This document shows, piece by piece, positions 1-37,292 of a stretch of DNA of 64,000 bases. The stretch lies in the sequence record OR545507.1, one strand, 5' to 3'. A program made the translations under genes and the position numbers. Each line of letters begins with the position of its first letter. Position 1 is the first letter of the stretch. The notes under the pieces were generated by a model that was not told where the DNA came from, ran no database searches, and saw nothing but the letters and a program-made list of their open reading frames with translations.

Positions 1-112
1 CTGTATACAGCCTCTGTATCTGTATCCATAATCAAATCACCTTTGTTTAAATTACAAAAGTACTGATAACTGTGCTTAAAAGAATGTACTGATATTAAAA
101 AATCAAATTCCA

Positions 113-490
113 TCACACTTCCCCTAGATTGAAATGATTACAAAAATCATCTTCACCAGTACTGCACCAGATATCTATACATTCCCTGTGAATACATTTA
201 ATTCTACGCTGTAATTCAATCATCTCTTCTAATGTACAGATGTACTTCTTATCAAATACTAATGCCGCCTGAAACAGTGCAGCATCATCAAGTACTGTAT
301 AGTCCAACATCTCGGTTGCTTTACCCCTAAACCCAGTACTAAAATCCATCAAATAAAAGTCAGCATTCCAGTACTTTAAAATCTTGTCCCTAGCGTAGTT
401 TAAATCACCCTTGTATAAGTTAGAGTGCGTAACTAACTCACCAGTGTACATCCATGTCCTTGCACAAAATTCATTATATTTTATTTCCAT
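113..490 (-). CDS. hypothetical protein, FQxSLV-motif family
   Basis: ORF; likely start MEIKYNEF at 490 (track start is a TTG); motif DDAALFQAALVFD. Confidence 0.7.
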   Translation of the reverse strand: MEIKYNEFCARTWMYTGELVTHSNLYKGDLNYARDKILKYWNADFYLMDFSTGFRGKATEMLDYTVLDDAALFQAALVFDKKYICTLEEMIELQRRIKCIHRECIDIWCSTGEDDFCNHFNLGEV

Positions 491-688
491 CTTAATCTCT
501 ACTATAATTAATAAGGTAAACTCCAATATAAGGAGAACGTTCGGCGGCGGGGTATTTTTTGTTTCAAGAAACATGAACTGTACTCTGAAAAACACAATAT
601 AAAACTTTATATTAAACATATACCTTAGCATGTTTTTCAGCGGAAATTTTTTTGACCCCCCCCTGCGGCCTGTCAAAATGAAACGTCT

Positions 689-913
689 CTATTTATTCAG
701 CCTAGAAACCTTGATTTCTTCAATCCTTTTCATTGCACAAAGCCTTCGACTCGTCCTCTCGTATATATTCAATACTCGCTGTAATGCATTATCTGTATTA
801 TCTGCAACTGCAATCTGAACCAAATATGTATCCTTCAAAATAGAATCCATCATGAATTCAAAACCTTTCACACTAAAGCAATATGCCACTTCCGGCTCTT
901 CAAACGTAATCAT
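689..913 (-). CDS. hypothetical protein
   Basis: ORF in co-directional packed run. Confidence 0.65.
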   Translation of the reverse strand: MITFEEPEVAYCFSVKGFEFMMDSILKDTYLVQIAVADNTDNALQRVLNIYERTSRRLCAMKRIEEIKVSRLNK

Positions 914-1109
914 AATTCCAATCCCCTATTCCCTCTAACCTTCTAAGATATCTTGCGTAAATTATTTCGAAATATCTGTGCAACGAAATTACGGATTGCT
1001 CATAATCATCATTCCTGTACATTGTGCATGTCAGAAAATCATTTAACCCAAAATCTAAACTGCACTTGAACTTCTCCTTTGCAATATCACTATTACTTGC
1101 ACTTTTCAT
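900..1109 (-). CDS. hypothetical protein
   Basis: ORF overlapping neighbour; likely start MKSASN. Confidence 0.6.
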   Translation of the reverse strand: MKSASNSDIAKEKFKCSLDFGLNDFLTCTMYRNDDYEQSVISLHRYFEIIYARYLRRLEGIGDWNYDYV

Positions 1110-1269
1110 AATAAACCCTTTGTACCGCATTGGTGTACTGTGAACTCAGCACCACTAATAGGTAATCTATATTGTAAGCACGATTTCCTCGTTGACTAGC
1201 ACGGCTGGAATAAAGAATATTATCCACATATGTATTGAACTGATCTTCAAATAACTCTTTCATCAGCAT
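1093..1269 (-). CDS. small hypothetical protein (58 aa, not in ORF track)
   Basis: hand translation MLMKELFEDQFNTYVDN...YYEKCK fills the gap. Confidence 0.5.
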   Translation of the reverse strand: MLMKELFEDQFNTYVDNILYSSRASQRGNRAYNIDYLLVVLSSQYTNAVQRVYYEKCK

Positions 1270-1291
1270 TATACCATCACATAATCATACA

Positions 1292-1843
1292 TCATACATT
1301 AACAACTTTATCGATGTAATCTTCTAACATATCAATATATCTGGTATTGGTTCTAACTAAAAGGTATGCAAATCCAGAAAACTCCTGTGTATAATGCTTT
1401 ACAGCGTACATACAACGAAGCTTATCATTGTCATACATTGTACTGTACTGAAACAAACTCTCGTCTGATAGCTCTAATAACGCTTGGGCTTCACTTCTCG
1501 TGAACTTCATAGGGTCATGTACTGCATCACAAAAACAAACCTGTGTCTCGCTATTGAAACCCTGTGATAGATATATACCTTCACACTCTGAACGCACCGA
1601 TACTGCATTATAACTATGTGTTGCCCCCATCATATCTGAACTCAAAACTAAAATCAACCCATTTTTATTTTTAATCAACAAATCTGACTTAAGGGATTTG
1701 ATCTCCGTATGGGAAATATCACCAAATCTTCCTGGGACTTCAAACTTATCAACGTTGTATACAATCTTTTGTACTTGCTCTTTTAAACGCTTAATTGCAC
1801 TTCTGTCTTTTTCTAATGTATCTAATAAACTCATTGAACTCAT
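1292..1843 (-). CDS. hypothetical protein, FQxSLV-motif family
   Basis: motif DESLFQYSTMYD; likely start MSSMSLL. Confidence 0.75.
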   Translation of the reverse strand: MSSMSLLDTLEKDRSAIKRLKEQVQKIVYNVDKFEVPGRFGDISHTEIKSLKSDLLIKNKNGLILVLSSDMMGATHSYNAVSVRSECEGIYLSQGFNSETQVCFCDAVHDPMKFTRSEAQALLELSDESLFQYSTMYDNDKLRCMYAVKHYTQEFSGFAYLLVRTNTRYIDMLEDYIDKVVNV

Positions 1844-1853
1844 TGTACTTTCC

Positions 1854-2198
1854 TTACATATTTGTACCGAACAAAACGGAACTTTGAATGCCATTAATCG
1901 ACACTTCATGTACATATATATTTTGTCTGAACAAAGGAACTAATTGAACTAAACTCGTTTGCATAATAATATGCATATGTACATTGTCATATGCCGTTTC
2001 GTATTGGAATCGTGCAGCTTCATCTTCTATGAAATTCGGAACTTGGACTGGATTCTCAAAATTTGTCCTTGTACTGAACTGTACATCATTGTCCTGTACC
2101 TTAATACCATATGAATTATCATTGTTATCAACTACATCAAATTCAATTAAACTACCATCTTTACTGACGTTTACTATATAAACCGAAAATCGACTCAT
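1854..2198 (-). CDS. hypothetical protein, FQxSLV-motif family
   Basis: motif DEAARFQYETAYD. Confidence 0.7.
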   Translation of the reverse strand: MSRFSVYIVNVSKDGSLIEFDVVDNNDNSYGIKVQDNDVQFSTRTNFENPVQVPNFIEDEAARFQYETAYDNVHMHIIMQTSLVQLVPLFRQNIYVHEVSINGIQSSVLFGTNM

Positions 2199-2710
2199 AA
2201 ACCTATTTCCTCTAAATCTTTGACAAATGTATCATAATCCGATAATGACAAAAATATGTCTGTACTGATGTTTTGACGTAATGTATTAAACAAATTATGT
2301 ACCTGTAATAAATCAGGTGCATAAATCAGGGATTGCTGGAAATACGATTCTTCTGTATCTAATATATCCCTGCACTCAATTTCACGAACTCGTTGGTATA
2401 TTGAATTTAATAATACATTTTCATCTTTGAGCATTGGAAGGTATCGGATGTACATGTGCTCCATCAACTCATCCTGGATTGAACCCCTGAACTGCAACAC
2501 GTATTCAAAACACATCACTACATCTTGTAGGTAATTGGCACTGTAATTATTGCTGTAAACAATCTTATGACTTCTGAACTCATCATCATTTCTGAACCAA
2601 TTGTCACCTACTTTGGTGTACTTATGACTAAGCTTCCCATCCTCCAACGCTCGAATGAACTTCATAATGTTAATTGCAAAATCATATGAATGATGCTTGT
2701 GTTGATGCAT
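2195..2710 (-). CDS. hypothetical protein, FQxSLV-motif family
   Basis: motif EESYFQQSLIY; ATGA overlap. Confidence 0.75.
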   Translation of the reverse strand: MHQHKHHSYDFAINIMKFIRALEDGKLSHKYTKVGDNWFRNDDEFRSHKIVYSNNYSANYLQDVVMCFEYVLQFRGSIQDELMEHMYIRYLPMLKDENVLLNSIYQRVREIECRDILDTEESYFQQSLIYAPDLLQVHNLFNTLRQNISTDIFLSLSDYDTFVKDLEEIGL

Positions 2711-2718
2711 TTTTTACC

Positions 2719-2913
2719 TCAATTCTGTCCGAAAAAATAACCAAAATGTTTAAAGCAAGAAAGCATTACTATGTTCATCACTCTATCATCAAATTCATCT
2801 TGTGTTTCTGCACATAATGTTTCACAGATATTCAAATGTAATAATTCAAGCTGGAAACTGTCGGTGAACCAATCAAACTTACGGTATTTTTGTTTAACAT
2901 CAACTGTAAGCAT
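2719..2913 (-). CDS. hypothetical protein
   Basis: ORF in packed run. Confidence 0.6.
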   Translation of the reverse strand: MLTVDVKQKYRKFDWFTDSFQLELLHLNICETLCAETQDEFDDRVMNIVMLSCFKHFGYFFGQN

Positions 2914-2914
2914 A

Positions 2915-3538
2915 CTATATATCCAACCCTTTTACAACATCTACGAAATGTTCAAACACTTCTTTTGAAAAATAACCACCTTCACAAAAAAGCATACTAA
3001 ACGGTGGCAGCATGTCCGATAACTCTTTAGCTAAATTGATTTCTGCTCTTAACTCTTGAACATCAATGATATCATGTACTAAAGATAATTGAAACATGAA
3101 TGCATCTACATCTTCATTCATTTCTGAATTGTAATATAACTCTTCAGGGAATTTGTCGGTTTCGTAATAATAAAAAACTTTATTGTTGAACACACCACTA
3201 ATAGGAACATCATTTTCATCTTTCTTTGAAATGTTTGTTTCCCATGACTCTATATTATTAGGAACAAAAAAATCATAGGCTGATTTTGAACCCTGTACTG
3301 AATCCAACTTTATTCCATAATATTCCGTATCCATGTATTTCTGCTGTAATGTAATACCACGTGTACTGACATTCACTTGGAATATATCATCTTTATCTGG
3401 AACACTAAATGGAATACATAACACTGAATTCTCAGGGTATTTGGCAATGAATGCATCCAGCACTTTATTAAGCACCGGAATGGCAATTTTACTGTACTGC
3501 ATCAAATCATACATTTTAATTCTGGTCATATCATTCAC
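2915..3538 (-). CDS. hypothetical protein, FQxSLV-motif family
   Basis: motif DAFMFQLSLVHD. Confidence 0.75.
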   Translation of the reverse strand: MNDMTRIKMYDLMQYSKIAIPVLNKVLDAFIAKYPENSVLCIPFSVPDKDDIFQVNVSTRGITLQQKYMDTEYYGIKLDSVQGSKSAYDFFVPNNIESWETNISKKDENDVPISGVFNNKVFYYYETDKFPEELYYNSEMNEDVDAFMFQLSLVHDIIDVQELRAEINLAKELSDMLPPFSMLFCEGGYFSKEVFEHFVDVVKGLDI

Positions 3539-4070
3539 CTGTGTATGTTTTCACCCTTAGCGATTCAAAATCCCATACATCACTGATTGTACCATTGTGC
3601 CTGTAATCATAATATTCTACTAATACATTATACAATAACTTCAACGATACAAATTCATGATTCCACGGAGCTTTATTGTCATGAACACATTTGGTGATAT
3701 AAGGTATAATATATAAACTAAACAACACTAATGGTGAATGTATACATTGCATTTGAAAATATTCTTCTTCTTGCATACAATGTTCAGGAATAATTAGATC
3801 ATAATGTGTCTCAAATAAATGTAAACCTATTGTGGTTTTTTTCGTATCACATGCGTACCATATTGTACTATCCGAAATAAATGGAATGATACCATTATTG
3901 TTTGCAATGTACATCATATGGTAAGAGCGATTTGTCTTGTTAAATATCTCGATACTTTCGATATTACTACAAATCATGTATTCAAGGCAATCAATGATCT
4001 TATCTTTAAATGTACCAATTTCATTGAATGACATTGCTTTCTGTACTTTTGATACTGTTGTACTGCTCAT
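3531..4070 (-). CDS. hypothetical protein, FQxSLV-motif family
   Basis: motif EEEYFQMQCIH. Confidence 0.75.
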   Translation of the reverse strand: MSSTTVSKVQKAMSFNEIGTFKDKIIDCLEYMICSNIESIEIFNKTNRSYHMMYIANNNGIIPFISDSTIWYACDTKKTTIGLHLFETHYDLIIPEHCMQEEEYFQMQCIHSPLVLFSLYIIPYITKCVHDNKAPWNHEFVSLKLLYNVLVEYYDYRHNGTISDVWDFESLRVKTYTGE

Positions 4071-4579
4071 ATGTTCTCCTTAAAAAAATCCAAATACTCT
4101 TCATTGAAAGCATATGTATCATCTTTTATGTTATGCACCACATAATCATAAAGAGCTATGAATGCAGGGATTATGATCTTACATGATTTATTATTGTATT
4201 TGTACTGCTCCAAATCAACGGTGTTCAATTTAGCAATAAGCATAGCAGCAAAGATATCTTCATGGCGGTGTACTGTGCTGTACTGAAAATACTCATCCTC
4301 TCCAATATCGGGATGATATAACGGTATAACCAAATTATTACGAATTGACATTTTATATTTTTGTAATGCAGCTAAATGCATGAACCACAATCTATCTTCA
4401 TGGAAAGATGGAAAAATAATTTTGTCTGTGCTAATAAAAATTTCTTCATTTCGATTATTTGTCACAAGAGGTGCATACATTTTAATTTTTGCAGATTTAA
4501 TAATTAAATTAAAAATATAATGAATCTTATGAACTGCACTTGATGCATCTTCGTATGTACTTGGGATTATGAAACTCAC
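4067..4579 (-). CDS. hypothetical protein, FQxSLV-motif family
   Basis: AAGGAG RBS then GTG at 4579; motif EDEYFQYSTVH. Confidence 0.75.
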   Translation of the reverse strand: MSFIIPSTYEDASSAVHKIHYIFNLIIKSAKIKMYAPLVTNNRNEEIFISTDKIIFPSFHEDRLWFMHLAALQKYKMSIRNNLVIPLYHPDIGEDEYFQYSTVHRHEDIFAAMLIAKLNTVDLEQYKYNNKSCKIIIPAFIALYDYVVHNIKDDTYAFNEEYLDFFKENI

Positions 4580-4606
4580 TATATGTTCTCCTTTAAAATG
4601 AATACA

Positions 4607-4636
4607 CATGATAACAGCTTTGGTCTTCTATGTCAA
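4607..4636 (-). promoter_or_regulatory. sigma70-type promoter
   Basis: TTGACA-N17-TATCAT on minus strand upstream of the 4067 gene. Confidence 0.55.
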
Positions 4637-4661
4637 TACCAAAACGAAAAAAGCCCATATC

Positions 4662-5168
4662 TTACGATACAGGCGTTATGGGCATGTTGATTTGAATTTC
4701 ATTGTACAAATCATCAATATATAGACATGAAAAAAACACACTATCTTGTACTATATTGTTGTGATAAAGCATTTTAAATACTACATAAAAAAATAAATCA
4801 ATATCATCGTGGACTAAATTCTGCTGGAACCACCACTCGTCTGTTAAATCTTGTGCATTAAAATCATCAGGAACTTCAATGAACGACATATCACAATCTT
4901 CTTTGTACTCAAACCACATGTCGTCATTCGGATAACGTTCATGCTTCTCTGGGTAACAATTGCTGGGATTAAATGTTAAAATATTAAACCCCGTAGAGCA
5001 ACGTTCTTTATTTAAAAATGTATTATTCCATACCTGATATTTTTCACCAACATCAAGCTCTTCTGTTACTGATTTTATTGCACATAATGTACTGTATATT
5101 GTTTCTATCTTGTGAACATATTTAAATGCAGCATCTAAGCTGAACTCTAAATCATACATGTACTGCAT
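4662..5168 (-). CDS. hypothetical protein, FQxSLV-motif family
   Basis: motif DEWWFQQNLVHD. Confidence 0.75.
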   Translation of the reverse strand: MQYMYDLEFSLDAAFKYVHKIETIYSTLCAIKSVTEELDVGEKYQVWNNTFLNKERCSTGFNILTFNPSNCYPEKHERYPNDDMWFEYKEDCDMSFIEVPDDFNAQDLTDEWWFQQNLVHDDIDLFFYVVFKMLYHNNIVQDSVFFSCLYIDDLYNEIQINMPITPVS

Positions 5169-5488
5169 AAAATTACCTCAACTAAAGCAAGAACTGTATT
5201 AAATTCAACTATACTTGTAATTCCTTGAAGGTACATGTACTTTGCTACTACATATTTCTGTACTAAATTATAATTATTAAATTCCTCAAAATTGTAATTT
5301 AGAACAAAATCTGTACTCAAAAATATCTTATGCATCTCTAATGCACTTTGATAATACGCGTACAACTCACGGATATCAATACTGGTTAAATTATATTGTT
5401 CATATCTATGATACGGGATGGCTTCAATTTCAATACTATAAAACCATTCTCTTAACTTATTAATATCAAATGTATTATTCAGCTTCAT
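5147..5488 (-). CDS. hypothetical protein
   Basis: ORF overlapping neighbours. Confidence 0.65.
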   Translation of the reverse strand: MKLNNTFDINKLREWFYSIEIEAIPYHRYEQYNLTSIDIRELYAYYQSALEMHKIFLSTDFVLNYNFEEFNNYNLVQKYVVAKYMYLQGITSIVEFNTVLALVEVILCSTCMI

Positions 5489-6041
5489 AACTCAATACCT
5501 CCATTAAACACTCATACACACCATCAATCGCATAAGCACAAAAATTGAAATTAATTTTGTGATTCTTGTGTAATGGACTATTGTGTACTGTACTCATTAT
5601 GACATTATAAAATAACAAACGCACTGGTACAAGCATTGAACCTTGGAAAAATTCTTCCTCTGATTTATATGTATTGTACTCTATTGTTTTGTTCGTTTCT
5701 TTATCATATGTTACCATTACTAATGGGGAATTTTTATTATACCATGCGTACTCTAAATCATTCTTTCCAATAACAGCACCAGGTGCGAAATCCAAAAGAC
5801 CAATAACACTACGGGCATTTGGTATATCTGGTGTATTGAATCGTTTATCAAAATGACTCGTGCACGCAATATATGTATTGTACTTCGATGGAATAATACC
5901 AATACATTTGTGGAAATGACGCTTGTGATATTTCTGGGCATTATATAAGGATGCAACAATACAAGCTAACTTTTGTCCCATAAGGATTGCATTAGCGTAG
6001 GTGTACTGAATTTCATTGCTGGTACGGTACTTCGAGGTCAT
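5475..6041 (-). CDS. hypothetical protein, FQxSLV-motif family
   Basis: motif EEEFFQGSMLV. Confidence 0.75.
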   Translation of the reverse strand: MTSKYRTSNEIQYTYANAILMGQKLACIVASLYNAQKYHKRHFHKCIGIIPSKYNTYIACTSHFDKRFNTPDIPNARSVIGLLDFAPGAVIGKNDLEYAWYNKNSPLVMVTYDKETNKTIEYNTYKSEEEFFQGSMLVPVRLLFYNVIMSTVHNSPLHKNHKINFNFCAYAIDGVYECLMEVLSYEAE

Positions 6042-6324
6042 AATATTTCCTTTGCCATATCATGGGCTTAAAATCAATAACAGCTTTCTGTATCTTTTTT
6101 AATAATAAGACATCATAACCACCCGTGTCAATCACTAATTGCTGTTGGAACAATTCTTCATCGGATAATGTATTGAAATCTACAAAATAATCTGTAACTA
6201 TCGAATCATTTAAATGTGCCATGTACCAACCTGAACTTCTTGAATAAATCAAATTCCACCCATCGTCATCATCTTCTAATTCAACATAAATCATATCTGG
6301 GGTATACATCATTTTATACTTCAT
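6013..6324 (-). CDS. hypothetical protein, FQxSLV-motif family
   Basis: motif DEELFQQQLVID. Confidence 0.75.
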   Translation of the reverse strand: MKYKMMYTPDMIYVELEDDDDGWNLIYSRSSGWYMAHLNDSIVTDYFVDFNTLSDEELFQQQLVIDTGGYDVLLLKKIQKAVIDFKPMIWQRKYYDLEVPYQQ

Positions 6325-6862
6325 AACTATATCCTTGCATTAATAAATCATAAACTACATGGACTAAATTTAATTGAATATAAAATTTTAAACCTTTAAT
6401 TAATGAATTCAAATGCATTGTACTGAATAACATTAGATACATCATCTCATGCGGTTTTGTGATTAATGATTTTTGAAATACGCCAGCTTCATCATAAGGG
6501 TCTATGAACTGAAATTTGTCTTCATCATAATTTGTATTGGAATGCTGATATATAAAATAATCATCATTGGTATTGTACCACAAATATCCTTCGAATCCTG
6601 TACTAACATCTTTGGTCAATGGGGATGCTGATACTGGATTTGAACTGATTAATGCACCTACATCAACAATCCCCGTTGTATCATATTCGATTTCAACATC
6701 AATATCAATGTATTTCCTTGCGATATCTGCGTTTATGGACAAATATAAACTACCACCTGTCCTCTGACTCAGGATTCCATCTATATGCGATATAGGATGG
6801 TTGTTATTGAGGATAAGCATTATTGTACTTATCTTGTGTGCTAATAACTCTATCTCATTCAT
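6314..6862 (-). CDS. hypothetical protein, FQxSLV-motif family
   Basis: motif EAGVFQKSLIT. Confidence 0.75.
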   Translation of the reverse strand: MNEIELLAHKISTIMLILNNNHPISHIDGILSQRTGGSLYLSINADIARKYIDIDVEIEYDTTGIVDVGALISSNPVSASPLTKDVSTGFEGYLWYNTNDDYFIYQHSNTNYDEDKFQFIDPYDEAGVFQKSLITKPHEMMYLMLFSTMHLNSLIKGLKFYIQLNLVHVVYDLLMQGYSYEV

Positions 6863-7062
6863 AATTTACCTATCGATGGATACCTAGGATTTGTAGGATG
6901 TAAAATCCTGTCCTGTACTGAAAGGTGCTCAAATGTAATTAAACTCAAATAATAATCGTAATTATCAATACCACCCTTCAAATGTATATTGTAATACATC
7001 TTAATACTATCTAATAATGAATCCTGTAATGCATTTAATGTTATCGTATTAATCTTTTGCAT
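6859..7062 (-). CDS. hypothetical protein
   Basis: ORF, ATGA overlap. Confidence 0.6.
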   Translation of the reverse strand: MQKINTITLNALQDSLLDSIKMYYNIHLKGGIDNYDYYLSLITFEHLSVQDRILHPTNPRYPSIGKL

Positions 7063-7210
7063 TAATGTTCTTCTCTTAAAAATCGTTTGATAGCATAATC
7101 TAAATAAAATTCATAACACATGCTATCTCTGTTCTTTATCCATATTTTGTAATCGGATTTTATATTACGCAACAAATAATTTGTATTAATTGTGTAATAA
7201 TCTAATCGCC

Positions 7211-7603
7211 CTAATCTTTCCATTTAATAGGATACTCCTTTCCTTGTACTATATATGACAAAATCCATCCGTAATGAATAGGATGATTTTTGTCTGAATC
7301 AGGAATAAAATATAAAGCTGTACTTGGATTATGACTGAATAAATCTTTATTGTCAAATGTAAAATGTGATAATATAATTTTCCTTGCACTTGGACGAATA
7401 ACATTCTTAACACTGAACTCTGAACCTTTGTATTTCTCCGATAATTCAAATAATGCATCTGTAATTAAATCACTGATCTCTTGGATTACAAAATTCTGAT
7501 AAAATGCATTAATCTCTTTTAACTCTGTATACAATTCACTTCTGGTATTCAAAAGAAATATTACTTTTTTAAGATCCTGAACTATTTCTGGATTCATATT
7601 CAT
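7211..7603 (-). CDS. hypothetical protein
   Basis: ORF in packed run. Confidence 0.7.
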   Translation of the reverse strand: MNMNPEIVQDLKKVIFLLNTRSELYTELKEINAFYQNFVIQEISDLITDALFELSEKYKGSEFSVKNVIRPSARKIILSHFTFDNKDLFSHNPSTALYFIPDSDKNHPIHYGWILSYIVQGKEYPIKWKD

Positions 7604-7835
7604 TTATCTCATTCTGTAACTTAAGCATCAAAATTTGCATATTAATTTTTTGTAAAAGGTGCTTGATAAATTTCTGTGCCATTTCTTCTTGTTCTTTTGT
7701 ACCAAGATAAAATAACAGATTAAATTCTGATAATCGCAAAGAAAAATCTTCATCACCACCCTTTAAACAAAAATCCCTGTACTTTGTAGCGTACAAATAT
7801 TGGTTTACCTTTTTATAATACCCTGTGTTTTGCAT
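7569..7835 (-). CDS. GTxxQE-family small protein (outlier copy)
   Basis: LFYLGTKEQEE. Confidence 0.7.
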   Translation of the reverse strand: MQNTGYYKKVNQYLYATKYRDFCLKGGDEDFSLRLSEFNLLFYLGTKEQEEMAQKFIKHLLQKINMQILMLKLQNEINEYESRNSSGS

Positions 7836-8023
7836 ACTATCTCCGTTCGCAACGAATTTATATAATAATGAACAAATTGTTCTTGTGAACGTGTTCCAAG
7901 AAAAATAAACATATCAAACTCTGTTGTTTTTAAATTCAATGCATCTTTTGTAAAATTCCTGTTGAATTCCCTGTACTTTTGGGTCTTCCATTCTTGATTA
8001 ATTGTCTTGTATATCGATTTCAA
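7805..8023 (-). CDS. GTxxQE-family small protein (outlier copy)
   Basis: FIFLGTRSQEQ. Confidence 0.7.
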   Translation of the reverse strand: MKSIYKTINQEWKTQKYREFNRNFTKDALNLKTTEFDMFIFLGTRSQEQFVHYYINSLRTEIVCKTQGIIKR

Positions 8024-8324
8024 TGATTCTCCCTGATGTACCTTGTATTAGCTTATCATACATATCGAGCATCACTTTTTGAATACTAATTAGTACTGGC
8101 ATCGTGCAAATATCAATGTCGTATACTAAGCTGTACTGGAATAATTCATCTTCCTGCATTTGTACTAAATTAGGTAAAGGATAATTGTCTGCCTCTTCAT
8201 CCTGGTACTTGAAATGCATAACACCATCCTTTTTGTACAAAAGAATGTCAATATCACCTAACTCATCAGCATAACCAAAAATACATATACTCGATGTTTT
8301 TGCTATATTAAATTTCATCTCCAC
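7998..8324 (-). CDS. hypothetical protein, FQxSLV-motif family
   Basis: motif EDELFQYSLVYD. Confidence 0.75.
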   Translation of the reverse strand: MEMKFNIAKTSSICIFGYADELGDIDILLYKKDGVMHFKYQDEEADNYPLPNLVQMQEDELFQYSLVYDIDICTMPVLISIQKVMLDMYDKLIQGTSGRIIEIDIQDN

Positions 8325-8560
8325 CTCTCTCCGTCAGCACAAGAGTACTGGTACGTTGTCGTTAGGGTAGGGACCATGTTTGTAATGGGCATATTATTAA
8401 CAATAACGGTAACAGGCATAAGAATCGTCTCTACTCTACTCTGTCCTGTCCTTGTACAATTCATCTTCTGCATTTCATCTGAATCCATGAAATACAATAC
8501 AAATGGTGCAATCCCAAGAACAATACACAAGACGATAAGGAAATTTAAAAAATTTAACAT
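8315..8560 (-). CDS. small membrane-anchored protein
   Basis: hydrophobic N-terminus FLIVLCIVLGIAPFVLYF. Confidence 0.65.
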   Translation of the reverse strand: MLNFLNFLIVLCIVLGIAPFVLYFMDSDEMQKMNCTRTGQSRVETILMPVTVIVNNMPITNMVPTLTTTYQYSCADGERWR

Positions 8561-8586
8561 AATTTTTACCCTATGATTAACGTTAG

Positions 8587-8617
8587 TGTACTATATCAGT
8601 AATGAAAAGTACTGTCA
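8587..8617 (-). promoter_or_regulatory. sigma70-type promoter
   Basis: TTGACA-N17-TATAGT with AGTACT next to the -35; coordinates approximate. Confidence 0.65.
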
Positions 8618-8619
8618 AG

Positions 8620-9024
8620 CTAGTATTGCACTGTTCTAATGAAAGTACCTTTACTCATGGATTTAAGCTTATGAACCTCTTCCTGCATACCCTTAATTAA
8701 CCCTAAAGGTATAGGTAAATCATGTACTAAGCTGTACTGAAAGTATTCTTCTTCAGATAAAGTACTAACATCTGGAACGCCAATTTTAGTTATATAATCT
8801 TGATGTGTTGACCAATAAATTATATCTTCAGTACTATTGTACTCCCCATATACTGAACAATATTGATGAATATCTTTCCTGTACCCTTGAGCAATAAAGA
8901 ACTTATCTAATGCATTACCAGCATTAATAGAATTTACTTCGATTGTCACAGTACTTGAGCTTGTATAACTCTTAATATTATCAGTACTCTTAATACTCAA
9001 CGATGTGTTCTTCATAATCACCAT
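8620..9024 (-). CDS. hypothetical protein, FQxSLV-motif family
   Basis: motif EEEYFQYSLVHD. Confidence 0.75.
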   Translation of the reverse strand: MVIMKNTSLSIKSTDNIKSYTSSSTVTIEVNSINAGNALDKFFIAQGYRKDIHQYCSVYGEYNSTEDIIYWSTHQDYITKIGVPDVSTLSEEEYFQYSLVHDLPIPLGLIKGMQEEVHKLKSMSKGTFIRTVQY

Positions 9025-9334
9025 TAGGCTCCTGTTTAGATTCTTTCATTAGTACTATCATCTTATGTACTAATGGCATAGGGAACTCTAAATCCCATAC
9101 TAATGATTCCTGGAAGTATTCCTCTGGTGATAAAGTACTTAAATCTTTAATATCAACGTGCTTGTATATTTTATTTTCGTAATTAACAAATGATATATAT
9201 AAATCACTAACATAAGAATCATAGGTAATTGTGAATGGCTTACCCTTGTAATCCATTACATCTCTACATAGACTACTTTTGATATATGTATGTTCAAATG
9301 ATTTATATACCTTGAGTTGTATATTAGTTTTCAT
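8990..9334 (-). CDS. hypothetical protein, FQxSLV-motif family
   Basis: motif PEEYFQESLVWD; C-terminal part similar to 8620 gene. Confidence 0.75.
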   Translation of the reverse strand: MKTNIQLKVYKSFEHTYIKSSLCRDVMDYKGKPFTITYDSYVSDLYISFVNYENKIYKHVDIKDLSTLSPEEYFQESLVWDLEFPMPLVHKMIVLMKESKQEPNGDYEEHIVEY

Positions 9335-9599
9335 ATTTCTCTTTATTAGCTTGTTTGGTTTTATAGTGAATTAAATCTATTAATGTAATCAAGTACAACG
9401 TCAAATAGTACTCTTGTTGATCTGTACCTAATGATACAAAGAACTTGTGCTCATAGATTAAAACCTGTTTCTCTTCAAATGGACATTTAATCCTCTGTAT
9501 AGGCTTAAGTAAATGATAGTACTTATTAAATCTATGATACATTTCTAGTTCTGTCAGTACTTTCATATTAAACACATACTCCATTAGCTGTAGCATCAC
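9324..9599 (-). CDS. GTxxQE-family small protein
   Basis: SLGTDQQE. Confidence 0.75.
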   Translation of the reverse strand: MMLQLMEYVFNMKVLTELEMYHRFNKYYHLLKPIQRIKCPFEEKQVLIYEHKFFVSLGTDQQEYYLTLYLITLIDLIHYKTKQANKEKYEN

Positions 9600-9789
9600 G
9601 TAAAGCTGTCAAATACTTCTGTACGGCTTGCTCTTGCTTATTTGTACCTAAAAGTATATACATCCATAATTCACTGTAATGTACATCTTGTGTATAAGGG
9701 TCATTGTAACTTTTTGATAATATAGCATCAAATTCAGATGCATGAACCCTTGTGAACTTAAGAATATCTTGTTGTGTTATGATTCTCAT
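9568..9789 (-). CDS. GTxxQE-family small protein
   Basis: LLGTNKQE. Confidence 0.8.
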   Translation of the reverse strand: MRIITQQDILKFTRVHASEFDAILSKSYNDPYTQDVHYSELWMYILLGTNKQEQAVQKYLTALRDATANGVCV

Positions 9790-10001
9790 ATCTTTTCCTG
9801 TACAATCTGTATAAGAATACCTATGTGTGAATTAACAGTTCTCTCTTGATGCTGTGTTCCTAAGAGTGTCAGTACTATCATATCTGAACGCAAAAGATTT
9901 TTTTCAAGTTCACTTATATCAGTTCTTGAATCAAGTGCCATATATTTGTGATTATTCTTCCTGAATAGTGCCAAGTACTCTTGGTTTGATATTATCTTCA
10001 T
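9786..10001 (-). CDS. GTxxQE-family small protein
   Basis: LLGTQHQE. Confidence 0.8.
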   Translation of the reverse strand: MKIISNQEYLALFRKNNHKYMALDSRTDISELEKNLLRSDMIVLTLLGTQHQERTVNSHIGILIQIVQEKI

Positions 10002-10213
10002 AGTTTACTTTTAATTTCCATTAAAAGTGCTCTAATATGCTCATTGACAAATCGCTCTTGGGAATCTGTGTCTAGGGTGAGAAGCATTCTTAAATCGGAA
10101 CCTCTGATGGTATATTCTAAATCATTCTTTGATTCTCGCATAAGTTTCTGAAAGGATGAGAAGTGTAATCCCATGAGTTCAATGTATTCTGCTGTTCCTA
10201 GTGGTTTTGGCAT
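9998..10213 (-). CDS. GTxxQE-family small protein
   Basis: TLDTDSQE. Confidence 0.8.
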   Translation of the reverse strand: MPKPLGTAEYIELMGLHFSSFQKLMRESKNDLEYTIRGSDLRMLLTLDTDSQERFVNEHIRALLMEIKSKL

Positions 10214-10431
10214 TTTAGTTCAATAGCTCGTTTAAGTGTATTAATATAATCTTTAATGTCGTGTTCTTGATAGTTCGTTCCAAGGGTAGCTAGAACATAG
10301 ACTTCATTTCTCTTAATAATTTTATCCATATCTGGTATATCTGATGTGTTAATGACGAAGAGCTTCAAAAACAGTCCATTTATGATTGTTAGGTATTCTA
10401 CATCGGTAATGATTTTCATTTGCATTTGCAT
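10198..10431 (-). CDS. GTxxQE-family small protein
   Basis: TLGTNYQE. Confidence 0.8.
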   Translation of the reverse strand: MQMQMKIITDVEYLTIINGLFLKLFVINTSDIPDMDKIIKRNEVYVLATLGTNYQEHDIKDYINTLKRAIELKCQNH

Positions 10432-10637
10432 TTTCTCAGTACTGATTCTTTAAGTTCATTGATGTAGCACTCTACATATTCTTCTTGTAGGTTTGTTCCG
10501 ATATGTAACAGTACTCTTAAATCTGCTCTCAGTACTTCTTTGTCATCTTCATCTATATCAGACAGTGTTATGTTTAAGAATTTACTTGAACTCTCTATAA
10601 GTAATATTACTGAATCACCTTTGCTTAAAATTTTCAT
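10416..10637 (-). CDS. GTxxQE-family small protein
   Basis: HIGTNLQE. Confidence 0.8.
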   Translation of the reverse strand: MKILSKGDSVILLIESSSKFLNITLSDIDEDDKEVLRADLRVLLHIGTNLQEEYVECYINELKESVLRKCKCK

Positions 10638-10845
10638 AATCTCTTTTTGCTTTCCTCGCCAAAAGGTACATATACGATTCTTCGTATTGTGCTTGGTAGT
10701 TTGTGTTTAAGAGTCGAAACAACTTCTGTTCTGCTAGAACTAGTTGCTTATCTTCATAACAACGGTAGCGTATCAACTTTTTGTATTCGATGTTGATTAC
10801 ATCCATTACTATAAGCCCATGTTCATCATCTGTCAAGTGTTTCAT
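10615..10845 (-). CDS. GTxxQE-family small protein
   Basis: LLNTNYQA. Confidence 0.8.
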   Translation of the reverse strand: MKHLTDDEHGLIVMDVINIEYKKLIRYRCYEDKQLVLAEQKLFRLLNTNYQAQYEESYMYLLARKAKRDYENFKQR

Positions 10846-11084
10846 GCATTTTTTCTTTTTCTTATATGTTTAGTTAAAAGGTATATTAGTTTTCTGATGT
10901 ATTCTTCTTGATAGTTTGTTCCTAAGAGTGCAAGAAGTTTTGCTTCAACTAAAGCTAGTTGTCGTTCTTCGAATGTGTGTTCCAGTATGTACTTGGGGTT
11001 TGATTTTTTAGCGTAAGCACTATTAGTCTTCATTACAATCTTATGATATTCATTAGCTGTTAGGATTTTTAAATACTTGATCAT
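10842..11084 (-). CDS. GTxxQE-family small protein
   Basis: LLGTNYQE. Confidence 0.8.
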   Translation of the reverse strand: MIKYLKILTANEYHKIVMKTNSAYAKKSNPKYILEHTFEERQLALVEAKLLALLGTNYQEEYIRKLIYLLTKHIRKRKNA

Positions 11085-11304
11085 GTATCTTTTCCTTTAT
11101 AGAGAATTTAAGATATCGAAGCATACTTTCAATGTAATACTCTTGTCTGTCAGTGCCAAGAAAGTACATGAGTTGAATGTATAAAACTTCTGCACTCCTT
11201 TCCGCTGGAGACTTGTTTGTGTCGTTTGGAAGTTGATTTGTATGTTTTCTTGATTTAATTAGTCGTTCTTTTAACTCATCGTCTGTTAAGTATTTCATTT
11301 TCAT
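11053..11304 (-). CDS. GTxxQE-family small protein
   Basis: FLGTDRQE. Confidence 0.8.
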   Translation of the reverse strand: MKMKYLTDDELKERLIKSRKHTNQLPNDTNKSPAERSAEVLYIQLMYFLGTDRQEYYIESMLRYLKFSIKEKIHDQVFKNPNS

Positions 11305-11530
11305 TTACTTTTTCCTTAATAGTGATTTTAAGATATCTAATCATACGTGCAACATATTCCTCTTGTCTATCAGTTCCCAGAAGATATGGTAGTGATTGGA
11401 ATAATACTTCTGCACTCCTTTCTGCTGGGGTTTGGTTTAGGTCAATTGGACGTTTATTGGTATATCTCTTGGCACGAACTAATCTCTCGACGTATTCATT
11501 ATAGGTTAAGTATATCATTTCATTTTGCAT
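11276..11530 (-). CDS. GTxxQE-family small protein
   Basis: LLGTDRQE; close to 11053 and 11520 copies. Confidence 0.8.
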   Translation of the reverse strand: MQNEMIYLTYNEYVERLVRAKRYTNKRPIDLNQTPAERSAEVLFQSLPYLLGTDRQEEYVARMIRYLKITIKEKVNENEILNRR

Positions 11531-11750
11531 TTACTTTTTCCTTAATACTCATTATAAGATGTTCAATCATATTTTGAACCATAAATTCTTGTTTATCAGT
11601 TCCAAGAACGTATGGTAGCTTCTGAAACAATACATTTGCAGATACTTCAGATATTGATTGATTTGGAACGAACTTAAGAGTAATGTTTTTGGTTTTTAAC
11701 ATCTTCTCTTGAAATTCTTCATTCGTTAAGTATATCATTTCATTTTGCAT
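11520..11750 (-). CDS. GTxxQE-family small protein
   Basis: VLGTDKQE. Confidence 0.8.
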   Translation of the reverse strand: MQNEMIYLTNEEFQEKMLKTKNITLKFVPNQSISEVSANVLFQKLPYVLGTDKQEFMVQNMIEHLIMSIKEKVNAK

Positions 11751-11966
11751 TTACATTCTCTCATATATATTTTGGGTTAAAAGGTCAATCCAGATTTCCA
11801 CATATCGTTGTTGGTGTTGCGTCCCTAACAGTACACCCAACTTAGCTTCACACTCTAATAACAATCTGGTTTTGTATGGTAGACTTTGGAATCCTATAGT
11901 AGCATCTAATTTGGTAATTGCATAGTTGATTCGGATGAATCTTTCTTGCAATGTGATGTTGTTCAT
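11751..11966 (-). CDS. GTxxQE-family small protein
   Basis: LLGTQHQQ. Confidence 0.8.
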   Translation of the reverse strand: MNNITLQERFIRINYAITKLDATIGFQSLPYKTRLLLECEAKLGVLLGTQHQQRYVEIWIDLLTQNIYERM

Positions 11967-12253
11967 TTCTTAGTACACCTCAGTGGTTGGGTCATTTGAT
12001 AAAAGTACAGCTTACCTTTGATTTCCAGTAGTAACTCCGCGATTAAGCGATTTACTTCTGTATCTTGATAGTTTGTTCCTAAGAATACACCCATCTTTAA
12101 CTCACGCATCATAATCATTTTCTTACTGTGTTGAATTTCTGGGTTGTGATAGATTGTATTACGTTTGTGCGTAATTTTTGTCATACGCTCGGTATATTCA
12201 TCTTTACTTAAATTGATCATTTGCATGTTCATCAACCTCACATTTATTTTCAA
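11963..12253 (-). CDS. GTxxQE-family small protein
   Basis: FLGTNYQD. Confidence 0.8.
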   Translation of the reverse strand: MKINVRLMNMQMINLSKDEYTERMTKITHKRNTIYHNPEIQHSKKMIMMRELKMGVFLGTNYQDTEVNRLIAELLLEIKGKLYFYQMTQPLRCTKK

Positions 12254-12255
12254 TA

Positions 12256-12522
12256 CTATTCTTTAGTTTGTAGATATAGTTTTCTTCCAATGTATCTCTT
12301 AAGTGCGATTATGTATTCATCTACATAATACTCCTGATAGTTTGTTCCTATGAATGCACCCACCTTTAACTCAAGTTTCATAATCATCTTATTTCCGTGT
12401 TTAATGACTTCTCCGTGATGGATTTCATTAAGTCCAGGTGCAATTTTCACCAGGCGTTCTTTATATTTTGCTTGAGATAATTTAATCATTTTCATGTTAA
12501 TTACCCTTACATTTATTTTCAA
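12256..12522 (-). CDS. GTxxQE-family small protein
   Basis: FIGTNYQE. Confidence 0.8.
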   Translation of the reverse strand: MKINVRVINMKMIKLSQAKYKERLVKIAPGLNEIHHGEVIKHGNKMIMKLELKVGAFIGTNYQEYYVDEYIIALKRYIGRKLYLQTKE

Positions 12523-12727
12523 TACTATTCATGAGTTCTATAAGATAGTTTTCTACCTTACCTTCCTGATAGTTAGTCCCTAGGAAGTTGCACAACACGG
12601 CTTCTATGATTTTGATTTTCCTGATATCAGGCTTCAATCTTTTGTTATTGAATATTTGAATCCTTATATCTCTGGATGCATTTAAACGTTTTTGATATTC
12701 ATGGTAAGTTAAATGAATCATTTTCAT
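12497..12727 (-). CDS. GTxxQE-family small protein
   Basis: FLGTNYQE. Confidence 0.8.
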   Translation of the reverse strand: MKMIHLTYHEYQKRLNASRDIRIQIFNNKRLKPDIRKIKIIEAVLCNFLGTNYQEGKVENYLIELMNSIENKCKGN

Positions 12728-12942
12728 TTACGTTTAACCTCTCGCTGGAGGGCATCAATTAACATCAGTACAGCATTCTCTTGATAGTTTGTTCCTAAGA
12801 CTGAAAGCATCTTTATCTCATTTACTAAAATCAACTTCTTTGAGGGTTCAATAATGTGACTATCATAAACGGCCTTACGTGCTGGATAAGTTTTCGCCAG
12901 TATAACATAAAATTCGTCTTTACTTAAATTAATCATTTGCAT
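12724..12942 (-). CDS. GTxxQE-family small protein
   Basis: VLGTNYQE. Confidence 0.8.
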   Translation of the reverse strand: MQMINLSKDEFYVILAKTYPARKAVYDSHIIEPSKKLILVNEIKMLSVLGTNYQENAVLMLIDALQREVKRK

Positions 12943-13151
12943 TTACTTTTAACCTCTTTCTGTAGAGCGTCAATCCATAGATCTACATACATTTGTTGAT
13001 AGTTTGTGCCTAAGAGTGCACCTACATAGAGTTCAGTTACTAGTGCGTGCTTAAGGTTAGCTTGGATGCTCTTATCGCTTGATATCATTCTCCTTCTGCT
13101 TCCACATGTTTTCAGGAGTCTGATGTATTCAAAGCCTTGTAAATTTCTCAT
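12933..13151 (-). CDS. GTxxQE-family small protein
   Basis: LLGTNYQQ. Confidence 0.8.
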   Translation of the reverse strand: MRNLQGFEYIRLLKTCGSRRRMISSDKSIQANLKHALVTELYVGALLGTNYQQMYVDLWIDALQKEVKSKCK

Positions 13152-13363
13152 ATTTTGGATACCACCTTGTTACGTAAGGAACTTAATAATACGTCAGTGT
13201 AGATGTTTTGATAGTTTGTCCCTACGAATACACCCAACTTCATTTCAGCTATTATAACACATTTGTCCTCTTGTGCAATAGATTTGTTTAACACAATACT
13301 ATACACTTTTGATTTGATAGTTTGTAACCTCCAATGATACTGATACTCATTAAGGATTATCAT
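13148..13363 (-). CDS. GTxxQE-family small protein
   Basis: FVGTNYQN. Confidence 0.8.
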   Translation of the reverse strand: MIILNEYQYHWRLQTIKSKVYSIVLNKSIAQEDKCVIIAEMKLGVFVGTNYQNIYTDVLLSSLRNKVVSKI

Positions 13364-13598
13364 TCTCTTTCCTCCAGATTTCGGTTCTCATGTGTTGGCA
13401 GTGTGCATCAATATATTGCTCTATCGATCTGGCGATTGCTGTTTTATCAGTGCCTGTCATCAGTACAAGCATCTCGGCCTCACAGTGAAGTAAACGCATG
13501 ATATCATAGGGTAATATTTCAGATACCGTGTCATAGTGTTTCTGTGCCAGTGTCTGCAATAGTTTACAATACATTTTGTGATTTAGTCTTTGTCGCAT
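13350..13598 (-). CDS. GTxxQE-family small protein (divergent)
   Basis: EAEMLVLMTGTDK...IEQYIDA; motif has an insertion. Confidence 0.7.
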   Translation of the reverse strand: MRQRLNHKMYCKLLQTLAQKHYDTVSEILPYDIMRLLHCEAEMLVLMTGTDKTAIARSIEQYIDAHCQHMRTEIWRKENDNP

Positions 13599-13834
13599 TG
13601 TTTCTTCCATTCTCTTCTGGCTTGGCGGGTTTTATCTGATATTTCGTTTCTCAATGCAGAGATATATCGTAGAGTGAACAGTTCTTGATAGTTAGTCCCT
13701 ATGAATTTATTAAGATATACATCAGCGTTGACGATATCAGCTTCACGGGAATTATAAAGTTTATTGTTAGTGCGAAGGGTGTTTAGAAGAGAGAAGAGGG
13801 CAGTCTGATACTCAGTGCTTGATAAAGTTTTCAT
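13583..13834 (-). CDS. GTxxQE-family small protein
   Basis: FIGTNYQE. Confidence 0.8.
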   Translation of the reverse strand: MKTLSSTEYQTALFSLLNTLRTNNKLYNSREADIVNADVYLNKFIGTNYQELFTLRYISALRNEISDKTRQARREWKKQCDKD

Positions 13835-14069
13835 ATTTTTCCACAATTCGTTCATTTAGTTTTATCTGTATAAGATCCATTAGTTGTTCAAGATAATCGG
13901 TACAATATTTCTCTTGATATTGGGTTCCCACAAAGTACAGCAACCATAGCTCATGAACTTTAACTTTCATCTCGTTCCATGAAAGTGCATCGTCATCGTA
14001 GATTACTCTTGCTTCTGGGGTGAGCTTTCGAATTCTAAGTGAATATTCATCGTCCGTCAAGTGTTTCAT
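13812..14069 (-). CDS. GTxxQE-family small protein
   Basis: FVGTQYQE. Confidence 0.8.
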   Translation of the reverse strand: MKHLTDDEYSLRIRKLTPEARVIYDDDALSWNEMKVKVHELWLLYFVGTQYQEKYCTDYLEQLMDLIQIKLNERIVEKYENFIKH

Positions 14070-14224
14070 TTACATTTATCCCTTATTAGATTTGTGAGTG
14101 CAACTATGTGTTCATGGATATAAAAATTTTGATGAGAAGTTCCAAGAAAGTACAGCATCCATCCCTCACTCTGCTCGACTTCTAGTTTAGTATCGAGTTG
14201 GTCAGATATGTTAATGAAAACCAT
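14066..14224 (-). CDS. GTxxQE-family small protein (52 aa, not in ORF track)
   Basis: hand translation MVFINISDQLDTKLEVEQSEGWMLYFLGTSHQNFYIHEHIVALTNLIRDKCK; ATGA overlap. Confidence 0.75.
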   Translation of the reverse strand: MVFINISDQLDTKLEVEQSEGWMLYFLGTSHQNFYIHEHIVALTNLIRDKCK

Positions 14225-14448
14225 TAGTTCTTTTCCTTTCTTTCTATTTGTTTCATAAGAACATCGATATACTCACCCGCAAACCTATTCTGATACTGCG
14301 TCCCCATGAATTCCAACATCCATACTTCAGCAACCTTTTCTTCAATTTCAGTCCATTGTAAGTACATCATAGTGAAGTAAATGGTGTTCTCTTTTTTTCT
14401 GGCACTCTTAGCACGGGCCTCGTATTCAAAGTTATTAATGATGTTCAT
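14224..14448 (-). CDS. GTxxQE-family small protein
   Basis: FMGTQYQN. Confidence 0.8.
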   Translation of the reverse strand: MNIINNFEYEARAKSARKKENTIYFTMMYLQWTEIEEKVAEVWMLEFMGTQYQNRFAGEYIDVLMKQIERKEKN

Positions 14449-14662
14449 TACATTTGTCCATAATGTAATTCTTGAGTGCAACTATGTGTGCAATAACATA
14501 CTCTTCCTGGAAGTTCGTCCCCAGTACAGCCAACATGCGTACATCGGTGGTGTTTATCTTGTGTTCCAATCGAGTTAAACCTTTTATTTGTAAAAGGGTA
14601 TCGTATTTGTTTAATGCATCAATGATAATTCTCATCTTCTCAATATTACTTAAATGTTTCAT
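14435..14662 (-). CDS. GTxxQE-family small protein
   Basis: VLGTNFQE. Confidence 0.8.
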   Translation of the reverse strand: MKHLSNIEKMRIIIDALNKYDTLLQIKGLTRLEHKINTTDVRMLAVLGTNFQEEYVIAHIVALKNYIMDKCNEHH

Positions 14663-14871
14663 AGTTTACTCTTAATGTAGTTCTGAAGTTCAATTAAGTA
14701 TTTCCCTACATAATACTCCTGAAAGTCTGTATCCAAAAATGCACCCAAAAGTAAATCCTTCTCCATTGCCCTTGATAAGTTAAGGTCTGCATTTGAAAGG
14801 TATATAAGTAATATTTCAGTCTGGACAGAATTAAAACGTTTCTTATATTCTTCAGGTGTTAATATAATCAT
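14659..14871 (-). CDS. GTxxQE-family small protein
   Basis: FLDTDFQE. Confidence 0.8.
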   Translation of the reverse strand: MIILTPEEYKKRFNSVQTEILLIYLSNADLNLSRAMEKDLLLGAFLDTDFQEYYVGKYLIELQNYIKSKL

Positions 14872-15083
14872 AATTTGCTCCTGATGTATTTCTCAAGAGA
14901 TGACAAATACTTTTCCTCATAATACTCCTGATAGTCTGTTCCCAAGAATGCACCCATAAGTATTTCATTTTCCAATACCTCGGCTAAGTTTAAATCAGAC
15001 GTCTCTTCGTATATTATGAGGATTTCAAGTTGTCTGGCAGCGATGCGTTCAGTATATTGATATGAGTTTTCTATAATAATCAT
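14868..15083 (-). CDS. GTxxQE-family small protein
   Basis: FLGTDYQE. Confidence 0.8.
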   Translation of the reverse strand: MIIIENSYQYTERIAARQLEILIIYEETSDLNLAEVLENEILMGAFLGTDYQEYYEEKYLSSLEKYIRSKL

Positions 15084-15680: not shown

Positions 15681-15710
15681 AGGGACTCCCTTAAAATTAA
15701 TATCAATCAT

Positions 15711-36902: not shown

Positions 36903-36917
36903 AGTATTCTCTATTAA

Positions 36918-37100: not shown

Positions 37101-37105
37101 ATTAG

Positions 37106-37291: not shown

Positions 37292-37292
37292 A

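Follow-up and report, generated by a model that had tools for sequence, protein, structure and literature searches.

The first 9.3 kb of the genome record of Escherichia phage Sharanji (OR545507.1; Asteriusvirus, 350 kb) encode a run of small proteins that share a short segment built around Phe-Gln. We analyzed nucleotides 1–64000 of this record, hereafter the window, and compared the segment and its carriers with the rest of the genome and with other phages. The best overall explanation, which we consider probable, is that carriers of the motif form a multigene family specific to the lineage of the RaK2-like jumbo phages. On this view, the motif would be the only well-preserved helix in a very large and rapidly diverging family whose proteins are small, acidic and absent from the virion. 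This family, which was previously unrecognized and is defined by a single N-capped F-Q helix in a C-terminal module, is referred to below as the FQ family. The first 9.5 kb of the window is 100% identical to positions 1–9500 of OR545507.1, and Asteriusvirus relatives, including G17, phAPEC6 and PBECO4, match it at 95–100%.

The conserved F-Q segment

An earlier note on this DNA, made from the letters alone, had reported the motif in 14 open reading frames (ORFs) between 113 and 9334 and in two distant ones, at 38423–39094 and 55312–55971. These counts hold: the motif is found in 14 of 14 ORFs of the first region and in both outlying ORFs, all of them on the minus strand. The carriers are 103–223 amino acids (aa) long, as had been stated, and the motif lies in the C-terminal half of all 16, its Phe being 59–180 residues from the N-terminus and 39–74 residues from the C-terminus. 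GenBank annotates each of the 16 as a coding sequence for a “hypothetical protein”. A 17th candidate (2719–2913; 64 aa, FQLELLH) was left out, as it scored only 0.9 bits with the hidden Markov model (HMM) of the family. The motif is strongly enriched over shuffled controls, a check proposed in the earlier note. In 1000 residue shuffles of the 155-protein gene set, a loose form of the pattern is expected in 1.3 proteins and is observed in 15; the form [DE]xxFQx[SNQ][LTM][VMI] is observed in nine proteins versus 0.02 in shuffles, and the strictest form in four versus none. When each member in turn is omitted from the HMM, it ranks first among all ORFs of the window, with E values of 1e-12 to 0.02.

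The segment comprises 13 residues, with the consensus [ST]-E-E-E-x-F-Q-x-S-[LT]-[VIL]-x-D. Residue frequencies were compiled from 124 members at five loci, collected with a pattern that already required F and Q, so that the invariant F (position 0) and the Q at +1 (95%, otherwise M) are to be read with this in mind; every displayed motif of HMM-detected members likewise has F followed by Q or M. Upstream of the Phe, S or T occupies −5 in 59% of members, E is found at −4 (77%), −3 (70%) and −2 (44%), and −1 is hydrophobic or aromatic. Downstream, the residue after Q (+2) is variable, with Y, L, E and Q commonest; S follows at +3 (71%), L or T at +4 (48% and 27%), and V, I or L at +5 (90%), while +6 is again variable and frequently W, H or Y, and +7 is D in 44%. 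Information content reaches 2.3–4.3 bits at −4, −3, 0, +1, +3, +4 and +5 and is below 1.3 bits nearly everywhere else between −14 and +33. Among the 124 members it drops below about 1 bit beyond −5 to +7, and their conservation profile contains no second conserved element. The distance from the Phe to the C-terminus has a median of 52 residues and an interquartile range of 44–61.

Ser or Thr at −5 together with Glu at −2 constitutes a helix N-capping box, and a run of acidic residues suits the N-terminus of a helix. On a helical wheel, the conserved positions of the motif span one arc of about 200 degrees, with F and L/T at its hydrophobic center, V alongside, and E, E, Q, S and D forming a polar rim. 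The variable positions −1, +2 and +6, which are mainly aromatic or aliphatic, fall on the opposite side. We infer from this arrangement that the variable side of the helix rests against the sheet of the same protein, which is equally variable, and that the conserved side is held constant by something not co-conserved in the same chain, which may be a common partner, another family member, or a very demanding local structure.

Codon usage within the motif is mixed. Phe is encoded by TTT and TTC (8 each), Gln by CAG (9) and CAA (6), and Ser by both TCN and AGY codons. Since synonymous codons vary, the constraint acts on the protein and not on DNA or RNA. The pooled ratio of nonsynonymous to synonymous substitution (dN/dS), obtained with orthologues in a diverged Asteriusvirus contig, is 0.41 for the family versus 0.33 for neighboring genes; the carriers are therefore genuine genes, and the purifying selection on them is not tight. 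Within a single array, amino acid identity between orthologues can be as low as 57% or as high as 99%, a mosaic pattern of divergence, and the orthologue of 8620–9024 is missing in L006. The members are acidic, with a median isoelectric point of 4.8 versus 7.75 for the remaining window genes.

Size, fold and descent of the family

The 951 six-frame ORFs of at least 60 aa in the whole Sharanji genome were scanned with two family HMMs at E ≤ 0.01. This yielded 71 matches, all on the minus strand, 69 of which have the F[QM] core; three sets of shuffled controls gave none. These copies represent about 12% of Sharanji's 593 genes, or about one gene in eight. Most fall into three blocks, at 0–10 kb (14 copies), 70–120 kb (21) and 330–350 kb (32), with a few others scattered; an HMM count over 70–112 kb gave 22. 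The third block, with its 32 same-strand motif genes, occupies the end of the record (330,638–349,957), which is contiguous with the start of the window in the collapsed assembly.

The same expansion occurs in related genomes at the syntenic place, with differing copy content. Klebsiella phage RaK2 has at least 32 members, with matches in 245.6–279.6 kb; this array adjoins dam, as the Sharanji array adjoins dam at 325 kb. Erwinia phage Hallingskeid has 28 members within the 19.3-kb region examined, and the metagenomic contigs L002 and L004 also carry arrays. Searches with single members (tblastn) reach only Asteriusvirus and Hallingskeid; the RaK2 members are found with HMMs or by structure. 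Among 1.84 billion representative proteins, a profile search matched 33, of which 32 carry the motif and look phage-derived, the remaining one being a false positive: P0022, a 966-aa repeat protein with seven matched stretches, lacks the motif and was set aside as unrelated. A second profile search gave 56 matches, whose names and contigs indicate Asteriusvirus-like genomes, and a search of IMG/VR with a narrower alignment returned one Asteriusvirus contig. These searches found no cellular homologue, and by sequence the family appears essentially absent outside the RaK2-like phage group.

Neither Pfam nor NCBIfam gave a match at the curated threshold, and copies of the family are spread across at least 15 PHROGs without assigned function. 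One near-copy of gp023 (P0047; 87 aa, on a 1,057-bp contig) is filed under Actinomadura adrarensis as a “DUF2283 domain-containing protein”. In that assembly, the contig is probably a phage contaminant. An identity with DUF2283 was rejected, as P0047 reaches 13.9 bits versus the Pfam cut-off of 23 and none of 42 family members matches. No description of the FQ family or its motif was found in the literature searched; the paper on RaK2 counts about 10% of that phage's gene products as paralogues and says nothing more specific.

The fold of the short members was modeled with AlphaFold, using gp020 (106 aa) and a 42-sequence alignment of short members. The model has five antiparallel strands, followed by a helix at residues 56–65, which is the motif, and a second helix at 73–91. 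Mean confidence by the predicted local distance difference test (pLDDT) is 77 and the predicted template-modeling (TM) score is 0.68; the motif helix, at pLDDT 96, has the highest value of the domain. A first model, of gp022, has the same layout, and the motif scores 95–96 across the two. A Foldseek search of BFVD retrieved an independent model of gp020 that agrees with ours (TM 0.84), as well as other paralogues and RaK2 proteins at TM 0.6–0.76. Thus, in short members the segment is predicted to be an N-capped helix, the first of two that follow an antiparallel beta-sheet of four to five strands. As to whether the motif is a free helix or the core of a shared small domain, a question raised by the earlier note, it is for short members predicted to be an integral helix of a small domain, and this domain is not one of known function. 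Searches with Foldseek against the PDB and AFDB clusters gave only TM values below 0.4, the ESM Atlas structure search at most 0.50 and its feature search no family (best score 0.70), and a sequence-profile search of the PDB found nothing above background. VIA-align reported polo-box-like and p32/gC1qR/Mam33 resemblances at Z of only 4.5–6.3 (4.6–5.9 for the polo box, versus the tool's stated noise level of about 8). As in the predicted FQ fold, these proteins have an antiparallel sheet with a helix or helices on one face, and p32 is likewise very acidic; the Z values lie in the range termed a common arrangement, and we claim no relationship.

The motif had been described as grafted onto otherwise dissimilar proteins. 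In ordinary comparison the rest of the sequences does look unrelated: BLASTP between members mostly gives E > 0.01, and single-linkage clustering at 1e-4 fails to assemble the family. At the level of profiles and structures, however, this description breaks down for the short members. When the 12 motif columns are taken out of the HMM and the motif out of the targets, 11 of the 35 members not used for training still score higher than any non-member ORF, and an HMM of the C-terminal flank, built from the short members of other phages, scores 12 of the 17 short members in Sharanji higher than anything in the background. Leave-one-out tests confined to the window, motif deleted, had given no flank signal, a result revised once sequences of other phages were added. 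PHROG profiles of different members cross-match, once over about 150 residues.

A portable tag, spread by recombination or convergence onto unrelated proteins, would fit the long members, whose flanks cannot be aligned by HMMs built from paralogues, and the failure of BLAST clustering to join the members. It would leave several features without a reason: the tandem, co-oriented arrangement of the genes (71 of 71 on one strand), the constant distance to the C-terminus, the fold and flanks common to the short members, the PHROG cross-matches of up to 150 residues, and the fully scrambled motif codons, which indicate that no DNA cassette is shared. Nor does the segment behave as a short linear motif, which would be disordered and variably placed; it is a predicted helix with an interquartile range of 44–61 residues to the C-terminus. 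Overall, we consider a portable tag improbable; the short members are not products of grafting, the long ones are unlikely to be, and tandem, co-oriented paralogy describes the carriers better. A nucleic-acid element, such as a recombination site or an RNA motif, that merely resembles a peptide motif could explain the recurrence of the segment and nothing further. Synonymous codons are free at each of the conserved residues and Ser switches codon families, and an explanation at the DNA level was rejected on this variation; its likelihood is negligible.

Candidate roles and rival explanations

In T4, the capsid-targeting signal is an N-terminal leader; the prohead protease cuts it off, and the proteins that bear it are in the virion. 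Like the F-Q segment, this signal is a short sequence shared by otherwise different small phage proteins, and the earlier note had proposed, as one example, an analogous packaging signal. Unlike the T4 signal, the FQ motif stands 39–74 residues from the C-terminus and is predicted to be a well-folded helix; it is not an N-terminal leader, which in T4 is about 10 residues long. In addition, the mapped carriers lie outside both virion proteomes with which they were compared, that is, those of phAPEC6 (62 virion proteins) and RaK2 (54), the comparison covering family members from mapped arrays and orthologues. In phAPEC6, which is 98.5% identical across the region, the orthologues of window 1–9.5 kb are gp444c–gp467c; these are absent from the 62 virion proteins, although proteins of 4.7–15 kDa were detected. 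The same is true of the orthologues at gp039c, gp054c and the gp082c–gp148 block; within the 70–120 kb block, the phAPEC6 virion proteins gp035c, gp037c, gp077 and gp078c map to non-family genes. None of RaK2 ORF363–445 occurs among its 54 virion proteins, though proteins of 12–15 kDa were detected. It is true that phAPEC6 capsids have an inner body, described in one report (PMC7247149), so that packaged proteins do exist in this group. Judged by the virion data, the internal position of the motif and the helical prediction, a T4-like capsid-targeting role nevertheless appears very unlikely.

Another possibility is that the segment is a protease cleavage site. The pattern E-x-x-[YF]-x-Q followed by S or G resembles sites of the 3C/TEV type, and one member (5475–6041) reads EEEFFQGS. 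Across the family, however, the residue after Q is variable and the conserved Ser stands two positions past Q; the segment is predicted to be helical at top confidence, whereas a protease site takes an extended form. As prohead protease, the phage has an annotated T4 gp21-like enzyme, and proteases of that kind cleave after Glu. We regard cleavage as extremely improbable.

More attention is due to the idea, in its general form that of the earlier note, that the helix is an interface, and that the roughly 70 diversified proteins serve as exchangeable adaptors to one shared machine of phage or host. Such docking is compatible with shared ancestry and differs from the explanation preferred here only in what keeps the helix constant. 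High information content is limited to the helix positions, the helix alone has stayed constant in over 120 diverged copies, and the proteins offer no co-conserved element for it to pack against. The conserved arc of about 200 degrees includes the polar residues E, E, Q, S and D, and the variable −1, +2 and +6 would fit the side that packs on the protein's own sheet. Moreover, the phage encodes candidate shared machines, namely a ClpA-like ATPase, a ClpS-like adaptor and ClpP. On the other side, ordinary helix structure can also account for the S/T-x-x-E capping box, for the acidic residues at the helix start and for the hydrophobic F/L/V positions, and co-occurrence with ClpA is uninformative: a ClpA homologue is core to the RaK2-like group and present in unrelated jumbo phages, on which ground a family-specific co-occurrence was rejected. 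Docking to a common partner is possible, though we would not call it probable. In a more specific form, the FQ helix would be a constant docking element that couples about 70 diversified target-binding proteins to a single machine, for example the ClpA-like/ClpS-like/ClpP set or a conserved enterobacterial protein; this we consider unlikely. If it were true, RaK2-like jumbo phages would carry a large, evolvable adaptor repertoire to remove or neutralize host proteins, a bacterial-virus counterpart of the F-box/PRANC adaptor expansions in large eukaryotic viruses.

The genes for the ClpA-like ATPase, the ClpS-like adaptor and ClpP lie at 217,594–219,882, 135,529–136,074 and 304,750–305,445 of the Sharanji record (L014, L012 and L010, respectively). 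The ClpA homologue is kept in RaK2, SE_PL, CBB and Erwinia jumbo phages at 60–75% identity.

The FQ proteins would act inside the infected cell and would probably be made early. Early expression is suggested because the array lies just inside the terminal repeat of the genome, runs in the same direction as the repeat genes, and has sigma-70-like promoters in its gaps. Each copy would combine a beta-rich part that is free to diverge with an invariant helical surface, which has F and L/T at its center and E, E, Q, S and D around them. As a working model, we consider it likeliest that the proteins are diversified binders for host take-over or counter-defense. The variable part would confer specificity, with the conserved helix serving as a structural keystone and perhaps also touching a common partner or a second member of the family.

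Several observations weigh against this interpretation. The long class (150–335 aa), to which the majority of the window's members belong, is nearly devoid of detectable similarity outside the motif. The C-terminal flanks of long members exceed the 99th percentile of background in only 7 of 31 and 4 of 31 cases, and a model of the short-class N-terminal flank places none of 31 long members above that percentile, so that the common descent proposed for the long class would rest on tandem order, fixed motif position and PHROG cross-matches. The gp020 model is of medium confidence only, and the proposed burial or exposure of the conserved face derives from helical periodicity alone. As regards early expression, promoter-like sites overall number 75 versus 88 in shuffles and are thus not enriched. 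RNA-labeled sequencing runs, with only short, low-depth contigs or in one case probably DNA, do not bear on transcription.

Terminal multigene families are known from large DNA viruses, such as MGF110, MGF360 and MGF505 of African swine fever virus (ASFV) and the ankyrin/PRANC and Bcl-2-like families of poxviruses. Like the FQ family, these consist of dozens of tandem, co-oriented paralogues near a genome end, beside terminal repeats. They are extremely divergent, retain one recognizable element, vary in copy number by isolate, and are non-virion. The PRANC case is similar also in combining a variable binding part with a constant C-terminal docking element. Unlike the ASFV and poxvirus families, the FQ family belongs to bacterial viruses, it has no relation to them in sequence or fold, and its constant element is a helix inside a small folded domain. 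In phage G, the same phenomenon is seen, one small domain being amplified many times in a jumbo phage; with about 71 copies, the FQ family is roughly twice as large as that example, and RaK2 is among its carriers.

About one-eighth of the genes in a 350-kb phage, with comparable blocks in RaK2 and Erwinia relatives, form a single family that databases do not treat as one. Once the family is recognized, dozens of genes per genome now labeled “hypothetical protein” become a single question that experiments can address. The 13-residue segment provides a handle for detecting members, F and Q are the obvious residues to mutate, and the possibility is raised that these phages hold a repertoire of diversified binders for host take-over or counter-defense. 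Should the helix prove to be only structural, the family would still be a useful annotation and a striking paralogue expansion in phage.

The array in its genomic setting

The paper on Sharanji gives a direct terminal repeat of 20,668 bp. The G17 record begins at position 15,778 of the window, and the repeat therefore corresponds to about 15,778–36,445 of the window. Read inward from the right genome end, the repeat is followed by a 28-member family of 52–96-aa proteins (7569–15710) and then by the 29-kb FQ array, all transcribed inward. In layout, this resembles the early regions found in phages whose terminal repeats are long. The terminal-repeat region has a G+C content of 0.38–0.41, compared with 0.30–0.35 to its left, and contains small genes with unusually large gaps between them.

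All FQ genes of the window lie on the minus strand. The first of them by position is gp001 (113–574; 153 aa), in which the motif DDAALFQAALVFD occupies 251–289 and whose flank-only HMM score of 13.3 is higher than that of any non-member. The next member, gp004 (1292–1894; 200 aa, motif at 1430–1468), belongs to the long class and ranks first in the leave-one-out test with E of 2e-7. It overlaps the short-class gp005 (1854–2198; 114 aa, motif at 1986–2024), which is followed by gp006 (2195–2710; 171 aa, motif at 2318–2356), a protein that matches PHROGs 9317 and 12674 across about 150 residues. Next come gp008 (2915–3529; 204 aa, motif at 3071–3109), gp009 (3531–4070; 179 aa, motif at 3735–3773), gp010 (4067–4609; 180 aa, motif at 4265–4303) and gp011 (4662–5168; 168 aa, motif at 4806–4844). 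The 188-aa gp013 (5475–6041, motif at 5625–5663) shares a PHROG with the 182-aa gp015 (6314–6862, motif at 6455–6493); between them lies the short-class gp014 (6013–6324; 103 aa, motif at 6127–6165). Three further short-class genes complete this stretch, namely gp020, the protein used for the model (7998–8318; motif at 8118–8156), gp022 (8620–9024; 134 aa, motif at 8719–8757) and gp023 (8990–9334; 114 aa, motif at 9092–9130). The two outlying members are gp103 (38423–39094; 223 aa), with an FM variant of the motif at 38534–38572, and gp119 (55312–55971; 219 aa, motif at 55432–55470), the lowest-scoring member by HMM.

Contigs from a public sequencing run (X1), which probably represents DNA of a related phage population, contain two joints consistent with gain and loss of family members. 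At one joint, the gene at 8990–9334 (8990–9335) is repeated in tandem, with a side of 88 letters. At another, 406 nt are skipped inside 4662–5168; deletion joints are short-sided and provide weak evidence. The joint regions noted are 8990–9335, 4703–5110 and 6355–6792.

Of the five highest-ranking sigma-70-like sites on the minus strand, three are located in the few gaps between genes, at 10836–10808, 8618–8590 and 4636–4608. The candidate promoter at 8590–8618, in the gap 8561–8619, reads TTGACA, a 17-nt spacer and TATAGT, with a TG element; that at 4608–4636, in the gap upstream of gp010, reads TTGACA, a 17-nt spacer and TATCAT, again with TG. Both are identified by consensus match only. Directly after the stop codon of gp011, a terminator-like hairpin on the minus strand (4653–4674) has nine pairs followed by a T run, and its succession by the strong promoter-like site at 4636–4608 suggests a transcription-unit boundary inside the array.

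The 28 small genes between the FQ array and the repeat constitute a second tandem family, on the minus strand at 7569–8023 and 9324–15710, whose 52–96-aa products are joined by BLAST at 1e-4. The motif LGTxxQ[EQ] is found in 22 of the 28. These genes are interleaved with the last FQ members and end at the terminal-repeat boundary.

Beyond the repeat, twelve tandem paralogues of mostly about 380 aa occupy 40,799–55,060 on the plus strand, one of which is annotated as an RCC1-repeat protein. The outlying gp103 lies about 1.7 kb from the start of this RCC1-like array and gp119 just beyond its end. Its equivalent in the circular phAPEC6 record spans the origin, between about 348 kb and about 10 kb, a position that suggests correspondence with the “DNA condensation proteins” of the phAPEC6 virion (gp549, gp551 and gp003–gp010). 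Further right, at 56,016–58,796 on the minus strand, gp120–gp127 are eight adjacent genes for proteins of about 105–140 aa, with abutting or overlapping ends; they look like a tandem set, and BLAST at 1e-4 gave no cluster. Finally, an eight-member family of 60–77-aa ORFs lies on the minus strand at 36,711–40,285, and six of the eight (37106–37291, 37293–37478, 37488–37721, 37678–37860, 37862–38053 and 38055–38237) are unannotated in GenBank.

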